64,000 nt of DNA from sequence record PP885733.1, one strand, 5' to 3'. Made by a program: the position numbers and the translations under genes. The notes beneath the pieces are model-generated. The model was not told where the DNA came from. It worked only from the letters and a program-made list of their open reading frames with translations, and ran no database searches. Positions 15,636 through 34,824 of this stretch are shown in pieces (the stretch's first letter is position 1; every line of letters starts with the position of its first letter).

Positions 15636-15855
15636 GTAACTTTCCTGTAAAATGAGATTGAGTTTCTTAGCTAAAGATTGTTACAGAAATAAACTTTTAC
15701 TCTTGGAAGGTATTATTTAGAACTTAAACATGTTTACTCCGAAAGGAGGGAGTGGGGAAGGGGATTTGTTTATATACGATTTACGTAGTAAATATCCTCT
15801 TTAGTCTTTTGACTTTTAGAGAACAGCCCCCGCTCCTTATTCGGTATCTAAATTT

Positions 15856-15879
15856 CTACAAGCCGATATTATCTTATTG
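15856..15879 (+). promoter_or_regulatory. Early-type phage promoter (ATATTATC-N4-TG)
   Basis: One of seven aligned copies upstream of plus-strand units. Resembles the TATATTAC early motif of phiKZ. Confidence 0.65.
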
Positions 15880-15920: not shown

Positions 15921-16223
15921 ATGAAAAAGATTATCCTGATTGCTCTGTTACTGGCAATGGGCTCTGCACAAGCTGAAGTGAATACTGAACCGACCAAAAT
16001 GTGTCGTGTTGAAGTGTGTAACAAGCTGGAGCGTGTAACGCTGAGCATCAGCAAGTGGGTCTCTGACAGTATGGGCGAAACCTGCTTTGATGTCACCATG
16101 CCTAAAAGCGAAGCTATCCCAGGTAGCGTACTCAGATCTGAGTCTCGCTGGCACCAGGGTAGTTTCAATCCGACCAAGAAATCGGTCACTCGTGTTAACC
16201 GTGTTCTGGAATGTCAGGAGTAA
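15921..16223 (+). CDS. Secreted/periplasmic hypothetical protein with 4 Cys
   Basis: Signal peptide MKKIILIALLLAMGSAQA; AAGGA RBS. Confidence 0.8.
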   Translation: MKKIILIALLLAMGSAQAEVNTEPTKMCRVEVCNKLERVTLSISKWVSDSMGETCFDVTMPKSEAIPGSVLRSESRWHQGSFNPTKKSVTRVNRVLECQE

Positions 16224-16225
16224 TC

Positions 16226-16477
16226 ATGAAAACTGTATTATCAATTATCGCCATCATTGCTCTGGTTGCGTTCATGTGGACTCCAGGCGCTGGTTATCAA
16301 CCACAGGTTGAACAAGCCGGCTACACCAACGTACAGATGGGAACGTACAGCTTCCTCCACTGTCCGAAAGAAGAAGTCGGTTATGACTTCGTAGCGACTA
16401 AAGACGGGAAGCAGGTAGAAGGTGTTATCTGTCGTTCTCATTTCTTCTGGGGATCTTACCAGGTCCGTACTCTGTAA
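16226..16477 (+). CDS. Small membrane-anchored phage protein
   Basis: ATG at 16226 after AGGAG. Hydrophobic N-terminus and Cys pair (HCPKEE...VEGVICRS). Confidence 0.8.
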   Translation: MKTVLSIIAIIALVAFMWTPGAGYQPQVEQAGYTNVQMGTYSFLHCPKEEVGYDFVATKDGKQVEGVICRSHFFWGSYQVRTL

Positions 16478-16510
16478 TTCAAACTCTCACTTATTAAACA
16501 GGTAAACAAA

Positions 16511-16987
16511 ATGAAAACTATTATCGCAGCAGTTCTGGTTCTGTTCTCTTCTTTCTCTTTCGGTGCAAGCTACGACATGAAAGATCCTACCGAACTAGTA
16601 GGTGATCGTTGTGCTCCTGGTGACATTCTGTTCTACGGTATGAACATGAAGGGCACCAAAGACGTTCTGATCTGTCAGTGGGGTCAGAAGGTGTTCTATT
16701 CTTACGGCTCCACTATGGTGGGCGGTAACGAGAAAGAGATGATGATCGATCTCGATGCCTCCAAAGTTCTCTTCCGTATTAGTGACAACGATGTCGTATC
16801 CGGTGAGACCATGGTTATCCGTAATGCAACTCACGCTTACGGTATCGAGCACAAGGTCGATCTGAAAACGGGCGATGAAACCAACACCCTGGTTGTTATC
16901 CAACTGAGCGATAAGAAAGTTCTGGCTACCATTAAACTGGATCCAGACTTCATCGTAAACAACTTCCGCAATAATTTCGTACAATAA
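16511..16987 (+). CDS. Secreted/periplasmic hypothetical protein
   Basis: Signal peptide MKTIIAAVLVLFSSFSFGA; Cys pair; strongly biased codon usage. Confidence 0.8.
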   Translation: MKTIIAAVLVLFSSFSFGASYDMKDPTELVGDRCAPGDILFYGMNMKGTKDVLICQWGQKVFYSYGSTMVGGNEKEMMIDLDASKVLFRISDNDVVSGETMVIRNATHAYGIEHKVDLKTGDETNTLVVIQLSDKKVLATIKLDPDFIVNNFRNNFVQ

Positions 16988-16999
16988 GGCGAACTAACC

Positions 17000-17392
17000 A
17001 TGATGCATGTAACTGTTAACCTGTCTGCTCCGATTCACCATGAACGTAGCGGAATGTCCAAAGCGTTGCACAATCTGTATTACGGTCGTGATACGCTGTT
17101 GTCAATGATTACCCACAACGGGTATCCTCATCACGGTGGGGAACATGCACTCACCATCTCTGGTGGGCGCGTTGATGTTGTTGCCTGGTTGGAGCTGTTT
17201 GGTGAGCAATACCCAGACTGTGCTCCAGAGGTTGCGATTCTGAAACATCGCATTCGCACTCACTTCGTTCAGAATCCAACTGACCCACGTTTCCGTCTGG
17301 AACTGCGCAAGATCGAACGCCAGTTACCACATAACGGCGAGTTGGTCATGAAGCCATGGTTCTGGACTCCTGCCTGGGAAGAGGAACAATGA
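17000..17392 (+). CDS. Hypothetical protein
   Basis: 130-aa ORF tightly packed in the operon. Confidence 0.75.
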   Translation: MMHVTVNLSAPIHHERSGMSKALHNLYYGRDTLLSMITHNGYPHHGGEHALTISGGRVDVVAWLELFGEQYPDCAPEVAILKHRIRTHFVQNPTDPRFRLELRKIERQLPHNGELVMKPWFWTPAWEEEQ

Positions 17393-17679
17393 TCGAAGAC
17401 TTCAAAGAGACACTCACCTTCAAAGGCGGTATCTTTATTGGGCTGATGATGTGGATTTGTGTACTGATGTTAGTTGCTTTGCTGGGAGCGTTGTGTTACG
17501 CCCCATTTGAAGCAGCTGAGACACATCGTGAGATGGAAGCACAGCACTGCGTTAAGACTGACGAAAGCAGGGTGACTCACGGTACGATACTAATGCCGGT
17601 TGGTAAGGTAATGGTTCCGATGCCGAATACGAGCACTGAATATAAATATGATTGCGATGATGGCATTCGCTGGAGATAA
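17389..17679 (+). CDS. Membrane-anchored small Cys-pair protein (paralogue A)
   Basis: ATGA overlap with the upstream stop after GAGGA. TM segment, then C-x-x-T-x-E ... YDCDDGIRWR. Confidence 0.75.
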   Translation: MIEDFKETLTFKGGIFIGLMMWICVLMLVALLGALCYAPFEAAETHREMEAQHCVKTDESRVTHGTILMPVGKVMVPMPNTSTEYKYDCDDGIRWR

Positions 17680-17681
17680 CC

Positions 17682-17948
17682 ATGAAGACGTTACCGGTGG
17701 TGTTATTGATACTCTCGGTATCTTTGTCATCAGCTGTATCTGTGGGAATATATAAAGCATTCCCCAAGTCCTACACTATTTCTTTCAGTACGGAGCACTA
17801 TAAAGTTCATGAGAAGTACCCTGAACTGTTAGCTTATAACTGTACGATGACAAATGAGAAATTGACATCAAAGAAATGGGAAGATGGTGAATATGTGGAG
17901 CGTGAGCGCACGCTCTATATTTGTAAAGACAGAACTCTCTGGAGATAA
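17682..17948 (+). CDS. Membrane-anchored small Cys-pair protein (paralogue B)
   Basis: N-terminal hydrophobic segment, then CTMTNE ... YICKDRTLWR; GGAG RBS. Confidence 0.75.
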   Translation: MKTLPVVLLILSVSLSSAVSVGIYKAFPKSYTISFSTEHYKVHEKYPELLAYNCTMTNEKLTSKKWEDGEYVERERTLYICKDRTLWR

Positions 17949-17950
17949 CA

Positions 17951-18304
17951 ATGGAATACATTAGTAAGTTTATTGTGGTTGACAACGGTACTGAGAAAAT
18001 GGATATCGATGTCACACAAGTTGAAAGTGTCACTGGCACTTATGACAAGGCTGTTATCCGTGGTATTGGCGGGACTGTAATGTCTCTGCGTATTGGTCGT
18101 GAACGTATCATCAAACTGATCGAAGAACGCCGTAAGCAGTTGTGGGAAGTTGAACAGAAAGCGGTTAGTGTACATAGCCAGTTGTTGCTGGAGATCGTTA
18201 AGAACACCACGCCACCTGTTCCCGATCCAGAGGCAACAATCGAAGCGGCTAAGAAAAGCCATCTCAGCGAATTTCCAGAAAGCTCACCGCAGCTGTCTGC
18301 CTGA
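17951..18304 (+). CDS. Hypothetical protein, FlbD/LytTR-like N-terminal domain
   Basis: IDVTQVESV...AVIRGIGG pattern shared with neighbouring ORFs. Confidence 0.7.
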   Translation: MEYISKFIVVDNGTEKMDIDVTQVESVTGTYDKAVIRGIGGTVMSLRIGRERIIKLIEERRKQLWEVEQKAVSVHSQLLLEIVKNTTPPVPDPEATIEAAKKSHLSEFPESSPQLSA

Positions 18305-18720
18305 TGTGTAAAGCACCGACATATCCACCGGCCGGTTGTCATCGCCCGCCGGTTCCACCTCGGGTACCTCAGCCGTATAAACATCCGGTACCTAAAACCC
18401 CAATCGTAACCAAAGGAGAATCCAACATGGATTTCCAAATCGAATTTACCGATTTTGAACTTGATAGTAAGTTCTCTATCGATCCTCGTACCATTACTAA
18501 GATTGCCCAAAACGGTAATCGTGGTGTGATCTTTGTTGGCAATGAAGAAACCATCGTTGCTGAAGGTTATCATACCTGCAAAGATAAACTGCATACAGCT
18601 CTGGTCGCTATTCGTGAATACGAAGCCACCGAAGCTACCAATGCAGAAATCTGCCGTGAGCACGCTGATGGTAAGTTTGCCCGCACTCCCATTCCTCAGT
18701 CATCACGCTGGAGCTTCTGA
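18304..18720 (+). CDS. Hypothetical protein, FlbD-like domain (alternative start 18427)
   Basis: ATG at 18304 overlaps the upstream TGA. A strong AAGGAG RBS precedes ATG 18427 (MDFQIEF). Contains IDPRTITKI...VIFVGNEETIVAE. Confidence 0.7.
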   Translation: MCKAPTYPPAGCHRPPVPPRVPQPYKHPVPKTPIVTKGESNMDFQIEFTDFELDSKFSIDPRTITKIAQNGNRGVIFVGNEETIVAEGYHTCKDKLHTALVAIREYEATEATNAEICREHADGKFARTPIPQSSRWSF

Positions 18721-19127
18721 TGGAAAAGTTTCTCGATGTTGTCGTGGTCGATGATTACAAAGAAGGGACTGTCGTAAAGTCCAGACCTATGTTGGTGAAT
18801 ATCAAGAATATCGCCAAGGTCAAAACTTCTCAGTACATCGGCTGTTGTGTTGTTGCGACTGATGATGAGAAGAGTTACGTAGTACAGGGCGACTATTCGT
18901 ATATCCGTCAGCGTATCGACGATCTGAAACATACGGATGTTCGCAACTGTTATGTATTCAAGAGTGGGCCGAGTACTCACTATGTTCCACTAGACTCGGT
19001 TTCTGATATCCGTGTCGGTGAGAACAATGTGGTATCTCTGGTTGTCAAAACTGGCGATGTACTTTACACCGGTATGACTTTCGTCGATCTGCGTAAAACT
19101 ATCATCGACATTAACTTCGGGGGTTAA
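18720..19127 (+). CDS. Hypothetical protein with two FlbD-like domains
   Basis: PMLVNIKNIAKV...TDDEKSYVVQGDYSYIRQRI and a second copy YVPLDSVSDI...LVVKTGDVLYTGMTFVDLRKTI. Confidence 0.75.
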   Translation: MEKFLDVVVVDDYKEGTVVKSRPMLVNIKNIAKVKTSQYIGCCVVATDDEKSYVVQGDYSYIRQRIDDLKHTDVRNCYVFKSGPSTHYVPLDSVSDIRVGENNVVSLVVKTGDVLYTGMTFVDLRKTIIDINFGG

Positions 19128-19498
19128 TGATGGCTCATTATCTTGAGATTCATTCCGTACCAAAAGCCCGTATCCAGGGTGTGAAAGTTCTGTCATTCGT
19201 TGATGTCGATTTCAAAGATGAGATGTCTCCTCACTTTGAAACTGAACGTACTTTCATGAACGATACCGTTCGTCAGTATTTCGGTGCTGATCATGAAGAC
19301 GACTGGGATGCAGATTACTTTGTACTCCGGGAAGATGATGCCCTCTATCTGATCAAAGATATTGAAGCGCTTTATAAAGAGCCAGATGTCGATCAGGAAG
19401 AGGTTGAGCTTATCGCTCGTTTAATCTCCGTGCTGGAATTCGTACAAAGCGATTTCGGTAACGCAACCCACGGCTACGTGATTAGCTGGAGTAAATAA
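19127..19498 (+). CDS. Hypothetical acidic protein
   Basis: Translationally coupled ORF, 123 aa. Confidence 0.75.
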   Translation: MMAHYLEIHSVPKARIQGVKVLSFVDVDFKDEMSPHFETERTFMNDTVRQYFGADHEDDWDADYFVLREDDALYLIKDIEALYKEPDVDQEEVELIARLISVLEFVQSDFGNATHGYVISWSK

Positions 19499-19500
19499 CC

Positions 19501-19722
19501 ATGCCAAAGATCACCATCAATCTAAACGGATCTGTCCATAAACAACCTAGCGTCGAAATTGACGTTAAGGATATCGTTTGGATCTCCGGTAAAACAAACC
19601 GTCCGGGCTGCACTGTAACTCTGACATTGGGCCGTGTGCTTAAGAGCACTGACGACTCTACTGAACTGCGTAAAGCAATGGACGCAGCCAAAGCTGCTGA
19701 CGACACTCCTCAACGAGGTTAA
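19501..19722 (+). CDS. Small FlbD-like protein
   Basis: VEIDVKDIVWI...CTVTLTLGRVL; GGAG RBS. Confidence 0.7.
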   Translation: MPKITINLNGSVHKQPSVEIDVKDIVWISGKTNRPGCTVTLTLGRVLKSTDDSTELRKAMDAAKAADDTPQRG

Positions 19723-19723
19723 C

Positions 19724-19891
19724 ATGAAAGGTGTGAGTAGACGCTCATTACTGCTGTTTGTGGTGGGCAAATCTTTCACACCTAAAGCAGTGGTTCAAGA
19801 TGTAATCATTTCAACTGTAACAAAGGCTGTAGTTGGGCCAGAGCTAGAATTCCTAGCATCACTTAGAAAGAGGTTTAATTATGCAAAGTAA
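19724..19891 (+). CDS. Small hypothetical protein (55 aa)
   Basis: ATG after GAGG fills the gap between 19722 and 19881. Confidence 0.45.
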   Translation: MKGVSRRSLLLFVVGKSFTPKAVVQDVIISTVTKAVVGPELEFLASLRKRFNYAK

Positions 19892-20651
19892 AAATAAAGA
19901 CTGGTTTAAGTTCGATACGTACTGGCGTCAATGGTATCGCGTAATTCTCCGTAGCGGTGGTGACTTCATTTACGAGGTGTCCATCCTACTCACTCCGTTA
20001 AATGGCGGCGACGGTGAGTGGTTCAATATCAAAGATGTTCTGATTCAGAAACGCAATATGAACTATTGCTCTGGGAACATCAAGAGTGTTTGGACCCATG
20101 AACTTCCTCAAGAGGTCTACGAGCAACTGGAGAAGCGTTTCTCCAAAGATCGACTCAATACCTTACTTCACGCCGATCTCTATCCACTGATCGATTGGCG
20201 TCGTTATGACGAGGTTGCTGAGAAGCAGGTTCCACTGGAAGATTGTATTCGCCAGTTCGATGCAACTTATCAGGACGTGACCATCCTGAAAGAAGGCAGT
20301 GGGGAGCAGTTCCTATCTTCCCCTCAGTTCAAGGAACGCTTCCAGCTGGATATCCGTGAAGGCTATCAGTTGCTGGGTGGCTATCATGAAGGTCGTGATA
20401 AAACAGATGTCCTGGTTTACCTGACTTATGACATGACATCTGGGAAGGTCATTCTGGATGCTCGTACTTCTTCTGAAAACCATGACAGCATCGTGCGTTT
20501 CCAATGTCACCGTGTTAAATCATGGCAGGAAGAATTCTACAGCGGCATCAAGAAGCTAACTGCTCTGGGCAATATCAATGAAGAATGTGTCCACGACCTG
20601 CACTTGATGATTGACCGCTCTGCAGTTTACATTTCCCAAATTAACCAGTAA
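19881..20651 (+). CDS. Hypothetical protein (256 aa)
   Basis: Long ORF in the operon with GAGG RBS; no recognised motif. Confidence 0.8.
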   Translation: MQSKNKDWFKFDTYWRQWYRVILRSGGDFIYEVSILLTPLNGGDGEWFNIKDVLIQKRNMNYCSGNIKSVWTHELPQEVYEQLEKRFSKDRLNTLLHADLYPLIDWRRYDEVAEKQVPLEDCIRQFDATYQDVTILKEGSGEQFLSSPQFKERFQLDIREGYQLLGGYHEGRDKTDVLVYLTYDMTSGKVILDARTSSENHDSIVRFQCHRVKSWQEEFYSGIKKLTALGNINEECVHDLHLMIDRSAVYISQINQ

Positions 20652-20660
20652 GGAAAAAGA

Positions 20661-21104
20661 ATGTCCCGTTACATTGGCATTAATGGCGTAGTAGTAAAGC
20701 AACCGCATCATAACAACATCATCCCTATCACTGCGGTACTGTTTACTGACCCTACCGATATTCACTTCCATCCGGGTTTCACCATCAACACCAATGGCGA
20801 TGCTCCGATTCCGGTTACTGGTGAATTCCAGTATCTTCAGGAGATCGTTGGTGATTATCAACCTCGTAAAGGTGGTGGCCAGGATGGCGAGGATATTAAG
20901 GACATTCTGAGTAAGCTTGACTGGACCGGTTATGCTTACATCTATAACGATGGGCAGATGTTGGAAACCCCTCGTTTACTTCTGGTTTCTAATCCATGCT
21001 GTATCGAAGAAGGTACTGGCTGGCGTGAAATCTCCACTGCTAAGCTGAAAGAAATGCTTAACGCTGACTTCGTAACTAAAGGTAAACCTGAACTATGGAA
21101 ATAA
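20661..21104 (+). CDS. Hypothetical protein
   Basis: AAGGA RBS; 147 aa. Confidence 0.8.
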   Translation: MSRYIGINGVVVKQPHHNNIIPITAVLFTDPTDIHFHPGFTINTNGDAPIPVTGEFQYLQEIVGDYQPRKGGGQDGEDIKDILSKLDWTGYAYIYNDGQMLETPRLLLVSNPCCIEEGTGWREISTAKLKEMLNADFVTKGKPELWK

Positions 21105-21562
21105 AATATCTGTACGGCCACATGTGGGCTGTTGAAGAAGGTAAGGAAGACGAGAAGCCGAACTGGAGCCTCGAGGACGCCGTCTTCTTAACCAGGAAGA
21201 CCGATGTGTTCCAACACGCTGACATGCGCTCTAAAGTCGGCATAGGCGTTCTGTGGGGTGGTTTCGCTAAGCGTTTCCGTAAGCCTGACGATATTCACTT
21301 CTATGGTGAATCGGTATCCTGCGGCGTGGAAACTCCTGAAGAAGGTGAAGGGCTGGAGCGTCTGAAGAAAGCCTACTTCGAAGGCGAGTTCTGGAAAACA
21401 GAAATCAAAGGACATGGTAGTTCTGTCCATACTGTTTTCGCTCTGGTACCGAAGGGTTATTACCCAACCGGTAAATGGATGGAAATCAACTGGGAGAAAT
21501 CTTCTCATGCCGAAATGCGCGAAATCATCGAAGCAGAAGCCAAAGCCGCGTGCGGTTGGTAA
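21095..21562 (+). CDS. Hypothetical protein
   Basis: 155 aa, overlaps the upstream stop; phage-typical codon usage. Confidence 0.8.
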   Translation: MEIKYLYGHMWAVEEGKEDEKPNWSLEDAVFLTRKTDVFQHADMRSKVGIGVLWGGFAKRFRKPDDIHFYGESVSCGVETPEEGEGLERLKKAYFEGEFWKTEIKGHGSSVHTVFALVPKGYYPTGKWMEINWEKSSHAEMREIIEAEAKAACGW

Positions 21563-22381: not shown

Positions 22382-22443
22382 GGAGGAACTTGCTAAGGAA
22401 ACTCAATCTCAAACGATTCTTTAGTTCAAGAAGCTCGAATAAT

Positions 22444-22467
22444 TTATAGGCAGATATTATCCTATTG
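22444..22467 (+). promoter_or_regulatory. Early-type promoter
   Basis: TTATAGGCAG-ATATTATC-CTAT-TG upstream of 22502. Confidence 0.7.
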
Positions 22468-34800: not shown

Positions 34801-34824
34801 TTATAGACAGATATTATCTACTTG
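34801..34824 (+). promoter_or_regulatory. Early-type promoter
   Basis: TTATAGACAG-ATATTATC-TACT-TG. Confidence 0.7.

Follow-up and report, generated by a model that had tools for sequence, protein, structure and literature searches.

A group of small adjacent genes in Pantoea phage Survivor (PP885733.1, 271,576 bp), lying within the 64,000-nucleotide stretch analysed here (the window, which is record positions 186001–250000, so that window position 1 is record position 186001), raises the question of whether their products form one protein family and, if they do, what such a family could do for the phage. Four of the genes, A, B, C and E, are GenBank coding sequences (CDSs), each annotated as 'hypothetical protein'. 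A preliminary description had read their open reading frames (ORFs), which match these CDSs in position, as an array of five small domains resembling FlbD/SwrD or LytTR. The reading reached here is that A, B, C and E are paralogues that share a single unit of about 60 residues, consisting of five β-strands followed by a C-terminal helix, and that they act as non-enzymatic binding modules; the probability of this reading as a whole is put at about 0.55. The genes and their units are as follows.

17951–18304, + strand: gene A (117 residues), with one unit at residues 1–62 (17951–18136) and then a helical, proline-rich acidic tail.
18304–18720, + strand: gene B (138 residues), with a proline-rich disordered N-terminus (18304–18426), the unit and a long helix at residues 42–121 and a conserved C-terminal tail.
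18720–19127, + strand: gene C (135 residues), with two tandem units, C1 and C2.
18720–18935, + strand: unit C1 (residues 1–72 of C), the hub of the family, with the best hhalign links to A, E and B.
18936–19127, + strand: unit C2 (residues 73–135 of C), the most divergent unit, with a conserved THYVP...V..I hairpin.
19130–19498, + strand: gene D (122 residues), interleaved between C and E and not a member of the family.
19501–19722, + strand: gene E (73 residues), with one unit and a conserved ...PxRG tail.

Pairwise Smith–Waterman comparison of the five units gave non-significant scores (z of at most 2.7 against shuffled sequences), and since these are indistinguishable from those of the shuffles the shared pattern is unprovable from the window alone. 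Profile–profile comparison with hhalign, using orthologue alignments from about 15 related genomes and contigs, matched the N-terminal unit of A to C1 at 95.5% (E-value 1.5e-8), C1 to E at 89% (E-value 2.2e-6), B to C1 at 64% (E-value 6.6e-5) and A to B at 53% (E-value 1.4e-4). With A, C1 and E merged into one profile, B was matched at 91% (E-value 1.1e-6 over 61 columns). C2 gave 38% with C1 (E-value 3.4e-4) and 45% with the merged profile (E-value 2.2e-4); its scores, and those of B before alignment enrichment, are marginal. Five unrelated neighbouring families that served as controls gave at most 4%, with one exception, in which the N-termini of E and of the protein encoded at 17000–17392 reached 37–43% over 30 columns (Smith–Waterman z of 3.8).

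A hidden Markov model (HMM) built from A, C1 and E only ranked B as the top non-training ORF both in the window (n = 643, E-value 0.013) and in the genome (n = 2,644, E-value 0.054), and it also detected C2 as the second domain of C. No further copy of the unit was found with this model among the 2,644 ORFs of the 271.6 kb genome. BLASTP cross-matches between E orthologues and C orthologues are reciprocal. In an alignment of 29 units, the conserved columns are hydrophobic positions 26, 28, 31, 34, 45 and 55, Gly50 and helix positions 62 and 66, which correspond to the motif noted in the preliminary description. These columns are almost all hydrophobic, and the alignment contains neither a catalytic motif nor an invariant polar residue common to the units. 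A 372-residue sequence (P0016) that appeared to be a relative with five stretches was rejected as a tandem-repeat translation artefact.

The AlphaFold2 model of C, made from a 15-sequence alignment (mean predicted local distance difference test score, pLDDT, 92.8; predicted template-modelling score, pTM, 0.59), consists of two consecutive units, each with five strands and then a helix. The strands of C1 span residues 4–14, 17–27, 31–36, 42–47 and 52–56, with the helix at 59–70, and those of C2 span residues 74–82, 85–90, 94–99, 104–109 and 114–120, followed by a short helix (121–125) and a further strand (129–132). In the AlphaFold2 model of B, made from nine sequences, strands 46–50, 56–59, 66–70, 73–78 and 81–85 precede a helix at 89–121; pLDDT is low at residues 1–41, lies at 78–92 by block over residues 41–110 and drops in the last third of the helix. 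The same topology is predicted for C1, C2 and B. A search of BFVD with the C model returned the A and E orthologues of Pseudomonas phage OBP and the A and B orthologues of Edwardsiella phage pEt-SU as single-unit matches with a probability of 1.0 and a root-mean-square deviation (rmsd) of 1.1–4.7 Å over about 70 columns; the A orthologues superpose at 2.1 Å (OBP) and 1.1 Å (pEt-SU) over about 70 columns, and OBP gp221, the E orthologue, matches one unit with a TMt of 0.63. The predicted topology of C1, C2 and B and the single-unit matches of the A, B and E orthologues confirm five copies of one fold across the four genes, as the preliminary description had counted them, and the family and fold part of the reading is regarded as highly probable.

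No signal peptide or membrane segment was found in the array proteins. The median isoelectric point (pI) is 5.7 for A, 5.7 for B, 6.5 for C (6.1 for Survivor C itself) and 8.9 for E, so that E is the only mildly basic member of the array, and an extra paralogue present in relatives is strongly basic (pI 10.2). The conserved C-terminal tail of B reads ...GKFARTPxPxxSxWSF. D is strongly acidic (net charge −16, pI 4.4); it gave at most 0.7% with hhalign against every unit profile and had no match in the family libraries or in a sequence search of the PDB. Its orthologues adjoin C or E in Kc263, pEt-SU, SXP01, L012, L015/16, L040 and L041. Two local resemblances were also observed. The C2 hairpin (YVxxxGxxTHYVPxDxVS) resembles the histidine-triad hairpins of pneumococcal PhtD (9p1v; five stretches), non-significantly at an E-value of 0.57, and the N-terminus of E (KITINLNxxVH) resembles that of the conserved 130-residue protein encoded at 17000–17392 on the + strand (MxVTVxLSAPxHH).

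Many phages encode small FlbD-like proteins, to which the unit is remotely related. A–E gave no match to FlbD (PF06289) in Pfam even at an E-value of 10 or below. FlbD is matched by five of 38 relatives and is the only Pfam family matched by more than two of them; all of these matches are sub-threshold, the best having an E-value of 0.0023 and 17.9 bits against a gathering cut-off of 24.7 bits. They map to the C1 unit, and the four with coordinates have a common register, aligning either β4–β5–helix with FlbD 27–56 or the unit with FlbD 2–56. One unit matches phrog_8458 'flagellar protein' with an E-value of 0.0063. Foldseek comparison, which the preliminary description had named as a check, is favourable in part: the C model retrieves phage proteins of 60–70 residues named 'Flagellar and swarming motility protein' (probability 1.0, TMt 0.73–0.79), these targets being phage proteins named from PF06289 and not cellular FlbD. 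Unnamed small proteins of many phages are also among the Foldseek neighbours, including N4 gp27 and proteins of Mycobacterium phage Muddy and Gordonia phage Chelms. N4 gp27 was considered as a bridge to FlbD and rejected, as it has no Pfam match. A word-indexed protein search with C and the unit alignment returned close family members only, NCBIfam gave no match with the unit alignment, Pfam and PHROGs gave nothing usable with the window proteins, and an IMG/VR scan with a degenerate DNA pattern for the FlbD motif E..PDT.I.L gave ten random matches and no FlbD.

The array proteins have in common with FlbD/SwrD a single β-rich unit of about 60–70 residues with a C-terminal helix and the motif hydrophobic-N/D-x3-I-x2-I ... 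V-x-L-x2-G ... V ... helix. They differ in that the matches of relatives all lie below the gathering threshold and the window proteins themselves give none, in their non-flagellar context and in being arrayed over several genes, one of which encodes tandem units, with tails particular to each paralogue. SwrD itself is listed as a torque enhancer (PMC13277936).

C as a whole plausibly resembles a degenerate LytTR-like two-unit domain. In a Foldseek search of the PDB with the whole model, the top matches are LytTR domains (ComE 4cbv at an E-value of 0.009, 3d6w, AgrA 4g4k, 4xqn and 3bs1), followed by tandem and single PH domains, and phage stand-alone LytTR proteins are among the BFVD matches. 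The LytTR chains match over about 123 columns with E-values of 0.009–0.07 and probabilities of 0.98–1.0; with template-modelling (TM) scores of 0.31–0.48 and an rmsd of about 16 Å, the halves of C match LytTR in order, without rigid superposition. A–E gave no match to Pfam LytTR (PF04397; gathering threshold 22.6 bits), and one A-like relative (L014) matches it below threshold (E-value 0.12, 13 bits). A LytTR profile was assembled from relatives of Escherichia coli BtsR, PyrR and Enterococcus and Staphylococcus regulators, and is thin because the BtsR search returned near-identical BtsR only. C2 aligned with the conserved second half of this profile (HRSxxVN...I..I...L.L.nG) at 50.7% (E-value 1.6e-4 over 44 columns), the controls giving at most 0.6%, and the whole of C aligned at 14%. 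Profile searches of PDB sequences returned no LytTR chain, and the searches with the C, unit and B profiles and with D gave no significant match. The depositors of Kc263, using HHpred, labelled its C orthologue 'accessory gene regulator protein A' (AgrA).

The two-unit C is similar to a LytTR domain in size and strand order, but in comparison with AgrA, ComE, BtsR and PyrR it has a 12-residue helix between the halves, is not basic and stands alone, lacking a receiver or membrane domain. The 'HRS' and 'vSR' positions of LytTR correspond in a low-confidence alignment to variable residues or Thr-Gly in C; the 'HR' and 'SR' positions are presumably DNA contacts in AgrA. C (pI 6.1) thus appears to have neither the basic DNA-binding surface nor the putative DNA-contact positions of LytTR. 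Since both the FlbD and the LytTR evidence is sub-threshold, the term 'FlbD/LytTR-like' used in the preliminary description holds at the level of fold and remote homology, as seen in the FlbD matches of relatives, the Foldseek results and the C2–LytTR alignment, and does not extend to family membership, the window proteins having no Pfam match to either family at an E-value of 10 or below.

For the single unit of B, the best PDB matches in Foldseek are PTB, talin-F3 and Sac7d/Sso7d domains (E-values 0.05–0.4). The PTB and talin-F3 domains match a core of strands and the C-terminal helix with a probability of 0.9–0.99 and an rmsd of about 4 Å over about 70 columns, and the tandem PH modules of Rtt106 and Pob3 match C. 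The array unit is, however, far smaller than PTB and PH domains, with five strands in place of a seven-strand sandwich, and the likeness is one of shape with no sequence signal. Sac7d/Sso7d proteins are of similar size (about 63 residues), have a five-stranded sheet and a C-terminal helix and match with a target-normalised TM score of 0.45–0.51, but Sac7d is a strongly basic protein that contacts DNA in the minor groove; A, B and C, by contrast, range from acidic to neutral and show no sequence similarity to it. As the B unit matches both PTB/talin-F3 and Sac7d/Sso7d, shape alone would fit either peptide binding or DNA binding.

When 1.84 billion representative proteins were searched exhaustively with HMMER and the C profile, no more than 13 true relatives of C emerged, and IMG/VR scans with C and its alignment returned only pEt-SU and OBP themselves. 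In these sequence searches the family is restricted to jumbo phages of the OBP/pEt-SU type. All related genomes and contigs examined carry C, and A orthologues occur in OBP, pEt-SU, Kc263, SXP01, L012, L017 and L040. The array content of these phages and contigs varies as follows.

Survivor: A-B-C-D-E.
L040: A-B-C-A''-D-E, with six units in five genes.
pEt-SU: A-B-C-D.
L041: B-C-D-E.
OBP: A-C-E.
L016: C-D-E-C'.
Kc263: C-A-C'-D.
SXP01: the same array genes in a different order.
Yubaba and L039: C only.
N1M2: the C2 half only.

C is therefore the conserved core, and A, B, E and the extra basic paralogue differ from genome to genome through duplication, shuffling and loss. In the comparison of Survivor with pEt-SU, identity is 31% for C and about 30% for A over part of its length, and it is 48–82% for neighbouring genes. 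A stable core surrounded by genes that are rapidly gained, lost, duplicated and diversified would be usual for accessory host-interaction genes. In N1M2 (L006 4046–4258), the C2 half of C is a CDS of 70 residues, and the tblastn match runs about 15 codons 5' of its annotated start; the published description of N1M2 holds no data on the array genes. In SXP01 (L009, PV593634; 3400–8100), most small genes of the syntenic block are unannotated, including the orthologues of A, B, C, D and E.

With the family and its fold as a basis, a mechanism is advanced tentatively. The array proteins would be non-enzymatic cytoplasmic binding modules with a common scaffold and differing ligands. The paralogues would differ from one another in surface and in tail (A has a coiled helix, B the proline-rich N-terminus and conserved C-terminal tail and E the PxRG tail), so that the host or phage partner probably differs from one to the next. 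The partner is judged likelier to be a protein or peptide than DNA, and may be bound by strand addition, a mode known from PTB domains and assumed for FlbD; the role would be an accessory one in host take-over or regulation. Binding modules are favoured because conservation is limited to the hydrophobic core, no catalytic motif is seen, A, B and C have acidic to neutral pI values and the appendages are paralogue-specific, and the single-unit matches to peptide-binding PTB and talin-F3 domains were counted for binding over catalysis or DNA binding. Several points weigh against this reading. DNA binders of the Sac7d/Sso7d type match the single unit and LytTR DNA-binding domains match C; E and one extra paralogue are basic; both the FlbD and the LytTR link lie below the family threshold, the latter with low TM scores in Foldseek; the membership of C2 would follow mainly from its predicted fold; and the pTM of 0.59 leaves the relative orientation of C1 and C2 uncertain.

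The main alternative is that the array encodes, at least in C and E, nucleic-acid binders of the LytTR type, in which C, alone or completed by single-unit paralogues, would bind DNA and regulate phage or host transcription. The rank of LytTR domains among the PDB matches of C, the alignment of C2 with the LytTR profile against low controls, the A-like relative with a weak Pfam LytTR match, the AgrA label given to the Kc263 orthologue, the stand-alone LytTR proteins of phages in BFVD and the Sac7d/Sso7d matches of the single unit all point in this direction. It nevertheless seems doubtful, as C is not basic and A and B are acidic, the 'HR' and 'SR' positions are variable or Thr-Gly in C in the low-confidence alignment, the TM scores do not exceed 0.48, no window protein matches Pfam LytTR and the PDB sequence profile search returned no LytTR chain. 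An extension of this idea, considered improbable, derives the LytTR fold from the FlbD-like unit as its ancestral half: the single-unit paralogues (A, B and E) would associate with C or among themselves into LytTR-like modules that bind DNA or imitate host LytTR regulators (BtsR and PyrR) and so rewire host signalling, with a paralogue repertoire tuned to each host and a clade that keeps both single and tandem forms.

The preliminary description had itself proposed that the proteins retune or block motility or serve as decoys for a host complex. As mimics of FlbD/SwrD they would target the flagellar motor or stators of the host, and the recurrence of sub-threshold FlbD matches among relatives, the similarity to PF06289-named phage proteins, the phrog_8458 match, the listing of SwrD as a torque enhancer and the presence of an annotated cyclic di-GMP phosphodiesterase elsewhere in the Survivor genome can be cited for it. 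That proposal is not borne out and is given very low probability: the window proteins have no FlbD match at an E-value of 10 or below, the array lies in a nucleotide-metabolism context with no flagellar or motility operon among its neighbours in the annotated genes of the window, and a single unit also resembles PTB/PH and Sac7d folds. To our knowledge, FlbD is absent from the flagellar regulons of the enterobacterial, Pseudomonas and Shewanella hosts, and the fold also occurs in phages of Mycobacterium and Gordonia, which are non-flagellated. The further alternative that there is no real family, and that the pattern is the generic look of small β-hairpin proteins, would explain pair scores equal to those of shuffles, the marginal standing of C2 and of B before enrichment and the control pair of E and the 17000–17392 protein, but it is largely refuted by the hhalign comparisons, in which A, C1, E and B reach E-values between 1e-8 and 1e-6 and the other controls stay at or below 4%, by the first rank of the left-out B among 2,644 genome ORFs, by the identical predicted topology of the units and by the reciprocal BLASTP cross-matches, and retains next to no weight beside a family of binding modules.

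The array lies inside a + strand block of about 15 small genes (15921–21562), which begins past the divergently transcribed nrdB and is followed downstream by genes for thymidylate synthase, deoxyribonucleotidase, DHFR, a GroEL-like chaperonin, RNase H, a helicase, RecA and RNA polymerase subunits. The surroundings of the array are thus nucleotide-metabolism genes (nrdB, thymidylate synthase and DHFR are nearby) and genes for small membrane or secreted proteins. Synteny of the block is kept in OBP, which we take to be a member of the phiKZ-related jumbo phages, in pEt-SU, in Serratia phages Yubaba and Sureiya, in Klebsiella phage N1M2, in Kosakonia phage Kc263, in Shewanella phage SXP01 and in metagenomic contigs. 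Rfam and tRNA scans of the window were empty.

The A/B and B/C junctions are ATGA overlaps and the remaining junctions are gaps of 2–3 nucleotides with GGAG ahead, an arrangement that, read from the sequence, indicates co-transcription and translational coupling of the array genes within one + strand block. B has two candidate starts: one is ATG 18304, which is coupled to A, and the other is ATG 18427 inside the gene, which has a strong AAAGGAG Shine–Dalgarno sequence; the proline-rich N-terminus of the long form, which starts at 18304, is kept in five other phages (P0019-22 and P0025). A promoter-like motif recurs ahead of + strand blocks.

15862–15879, + strand: promoter-like motif GCNGATATTATCYTATTG, 42 nucleotides 5' of ATG 15921, the first of the array block.
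22450–22467, + strand: further copy of the motif, 5' of the first gene of a + strand block.
34807–34824, + strand: further copy of the motif, 5' of the first gene of a + strand block.

These three + strand matches in the window compare with 0.22 expected, each lies 30–42 nucleotides ahead of the first ATG and, as far as sequence and position suggest, the motif may be a phage promoter. A scan of the window for sigma-70 promoters and terminators gave no excess over chance. Two of the intergenic regions that carry GCNGATATTATCYTATTG, those with the copies at 15862 and 22450, also contain a perfect 14-nucleotide inverted match (15653–15666 and 22398–22411).

Other features of the block were observed alongside the array. 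An antisense ORF across A and B (18040–18663, − strand, 207 residues) is probably spurious, because its length is not kept in relatives, where the stop-free antisense stretches opposite A/B vary from 87 to 186 codons. Two small membrane proteins encoded 5' of A (17389–17679 and 17682–17948, + strand) are alike at their C-termini (...YDCDDGIRWR and ...YICKDRTLWR), and their genes then carry an identical TGGAGATAAC-ATG junction; the similar ends and shared junction suggest a local duplication. On the 3' side of the array in nearly all relatives is a gene (19724–19891, + strand) for a conserved protein of 54–58 residues with the N-terminus MKGVSRRSLLLF (a twin-arginine-like SRRxLL motif), and the protein is 81% identical to its pEt-SU counterpart; the GenBank CDS starts at GTG 19634, overlapping E, and the orthologue starts correspond to ATG 19724. 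Outside the window, a CDS at Survivor record positions 269946–270674 (L028 20047–20775) is annotated 'cyclic di-GMP phosphodiesterase' and could influence host motility independently of the array.

The fold class and the automatic PF06289 names of some phage proteins were already known. New are the sub-threshold family itself, its LytTR-like tandem-unit member and the variable multi-gene array; in the literature, no paper was found that links FlbD with LytTR or deals with phage FlbD-like families or with such an array, in keeping with the preliminary description, which knew of no account of such an array. The array genes, 'hypothetical' in all deposited relatives except Kc263, are now given a fold, a family and an evolutionary pattern, that of a tandem-unit core with fast-changing single-unit paralogues, which is typical of host-interaction genes in jumbo phages. 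They form a well-defined candidate set for functional work. The results also raise the idea that an FlbD-like unit gave rise to the LytTR domain by duplication, and they suggest that small proteins of the FlbD-like kind serve phages widely as a scaffold that has no connection with flagella, so that the automatic name 'flagellar and swarming motility protein' may mislead.

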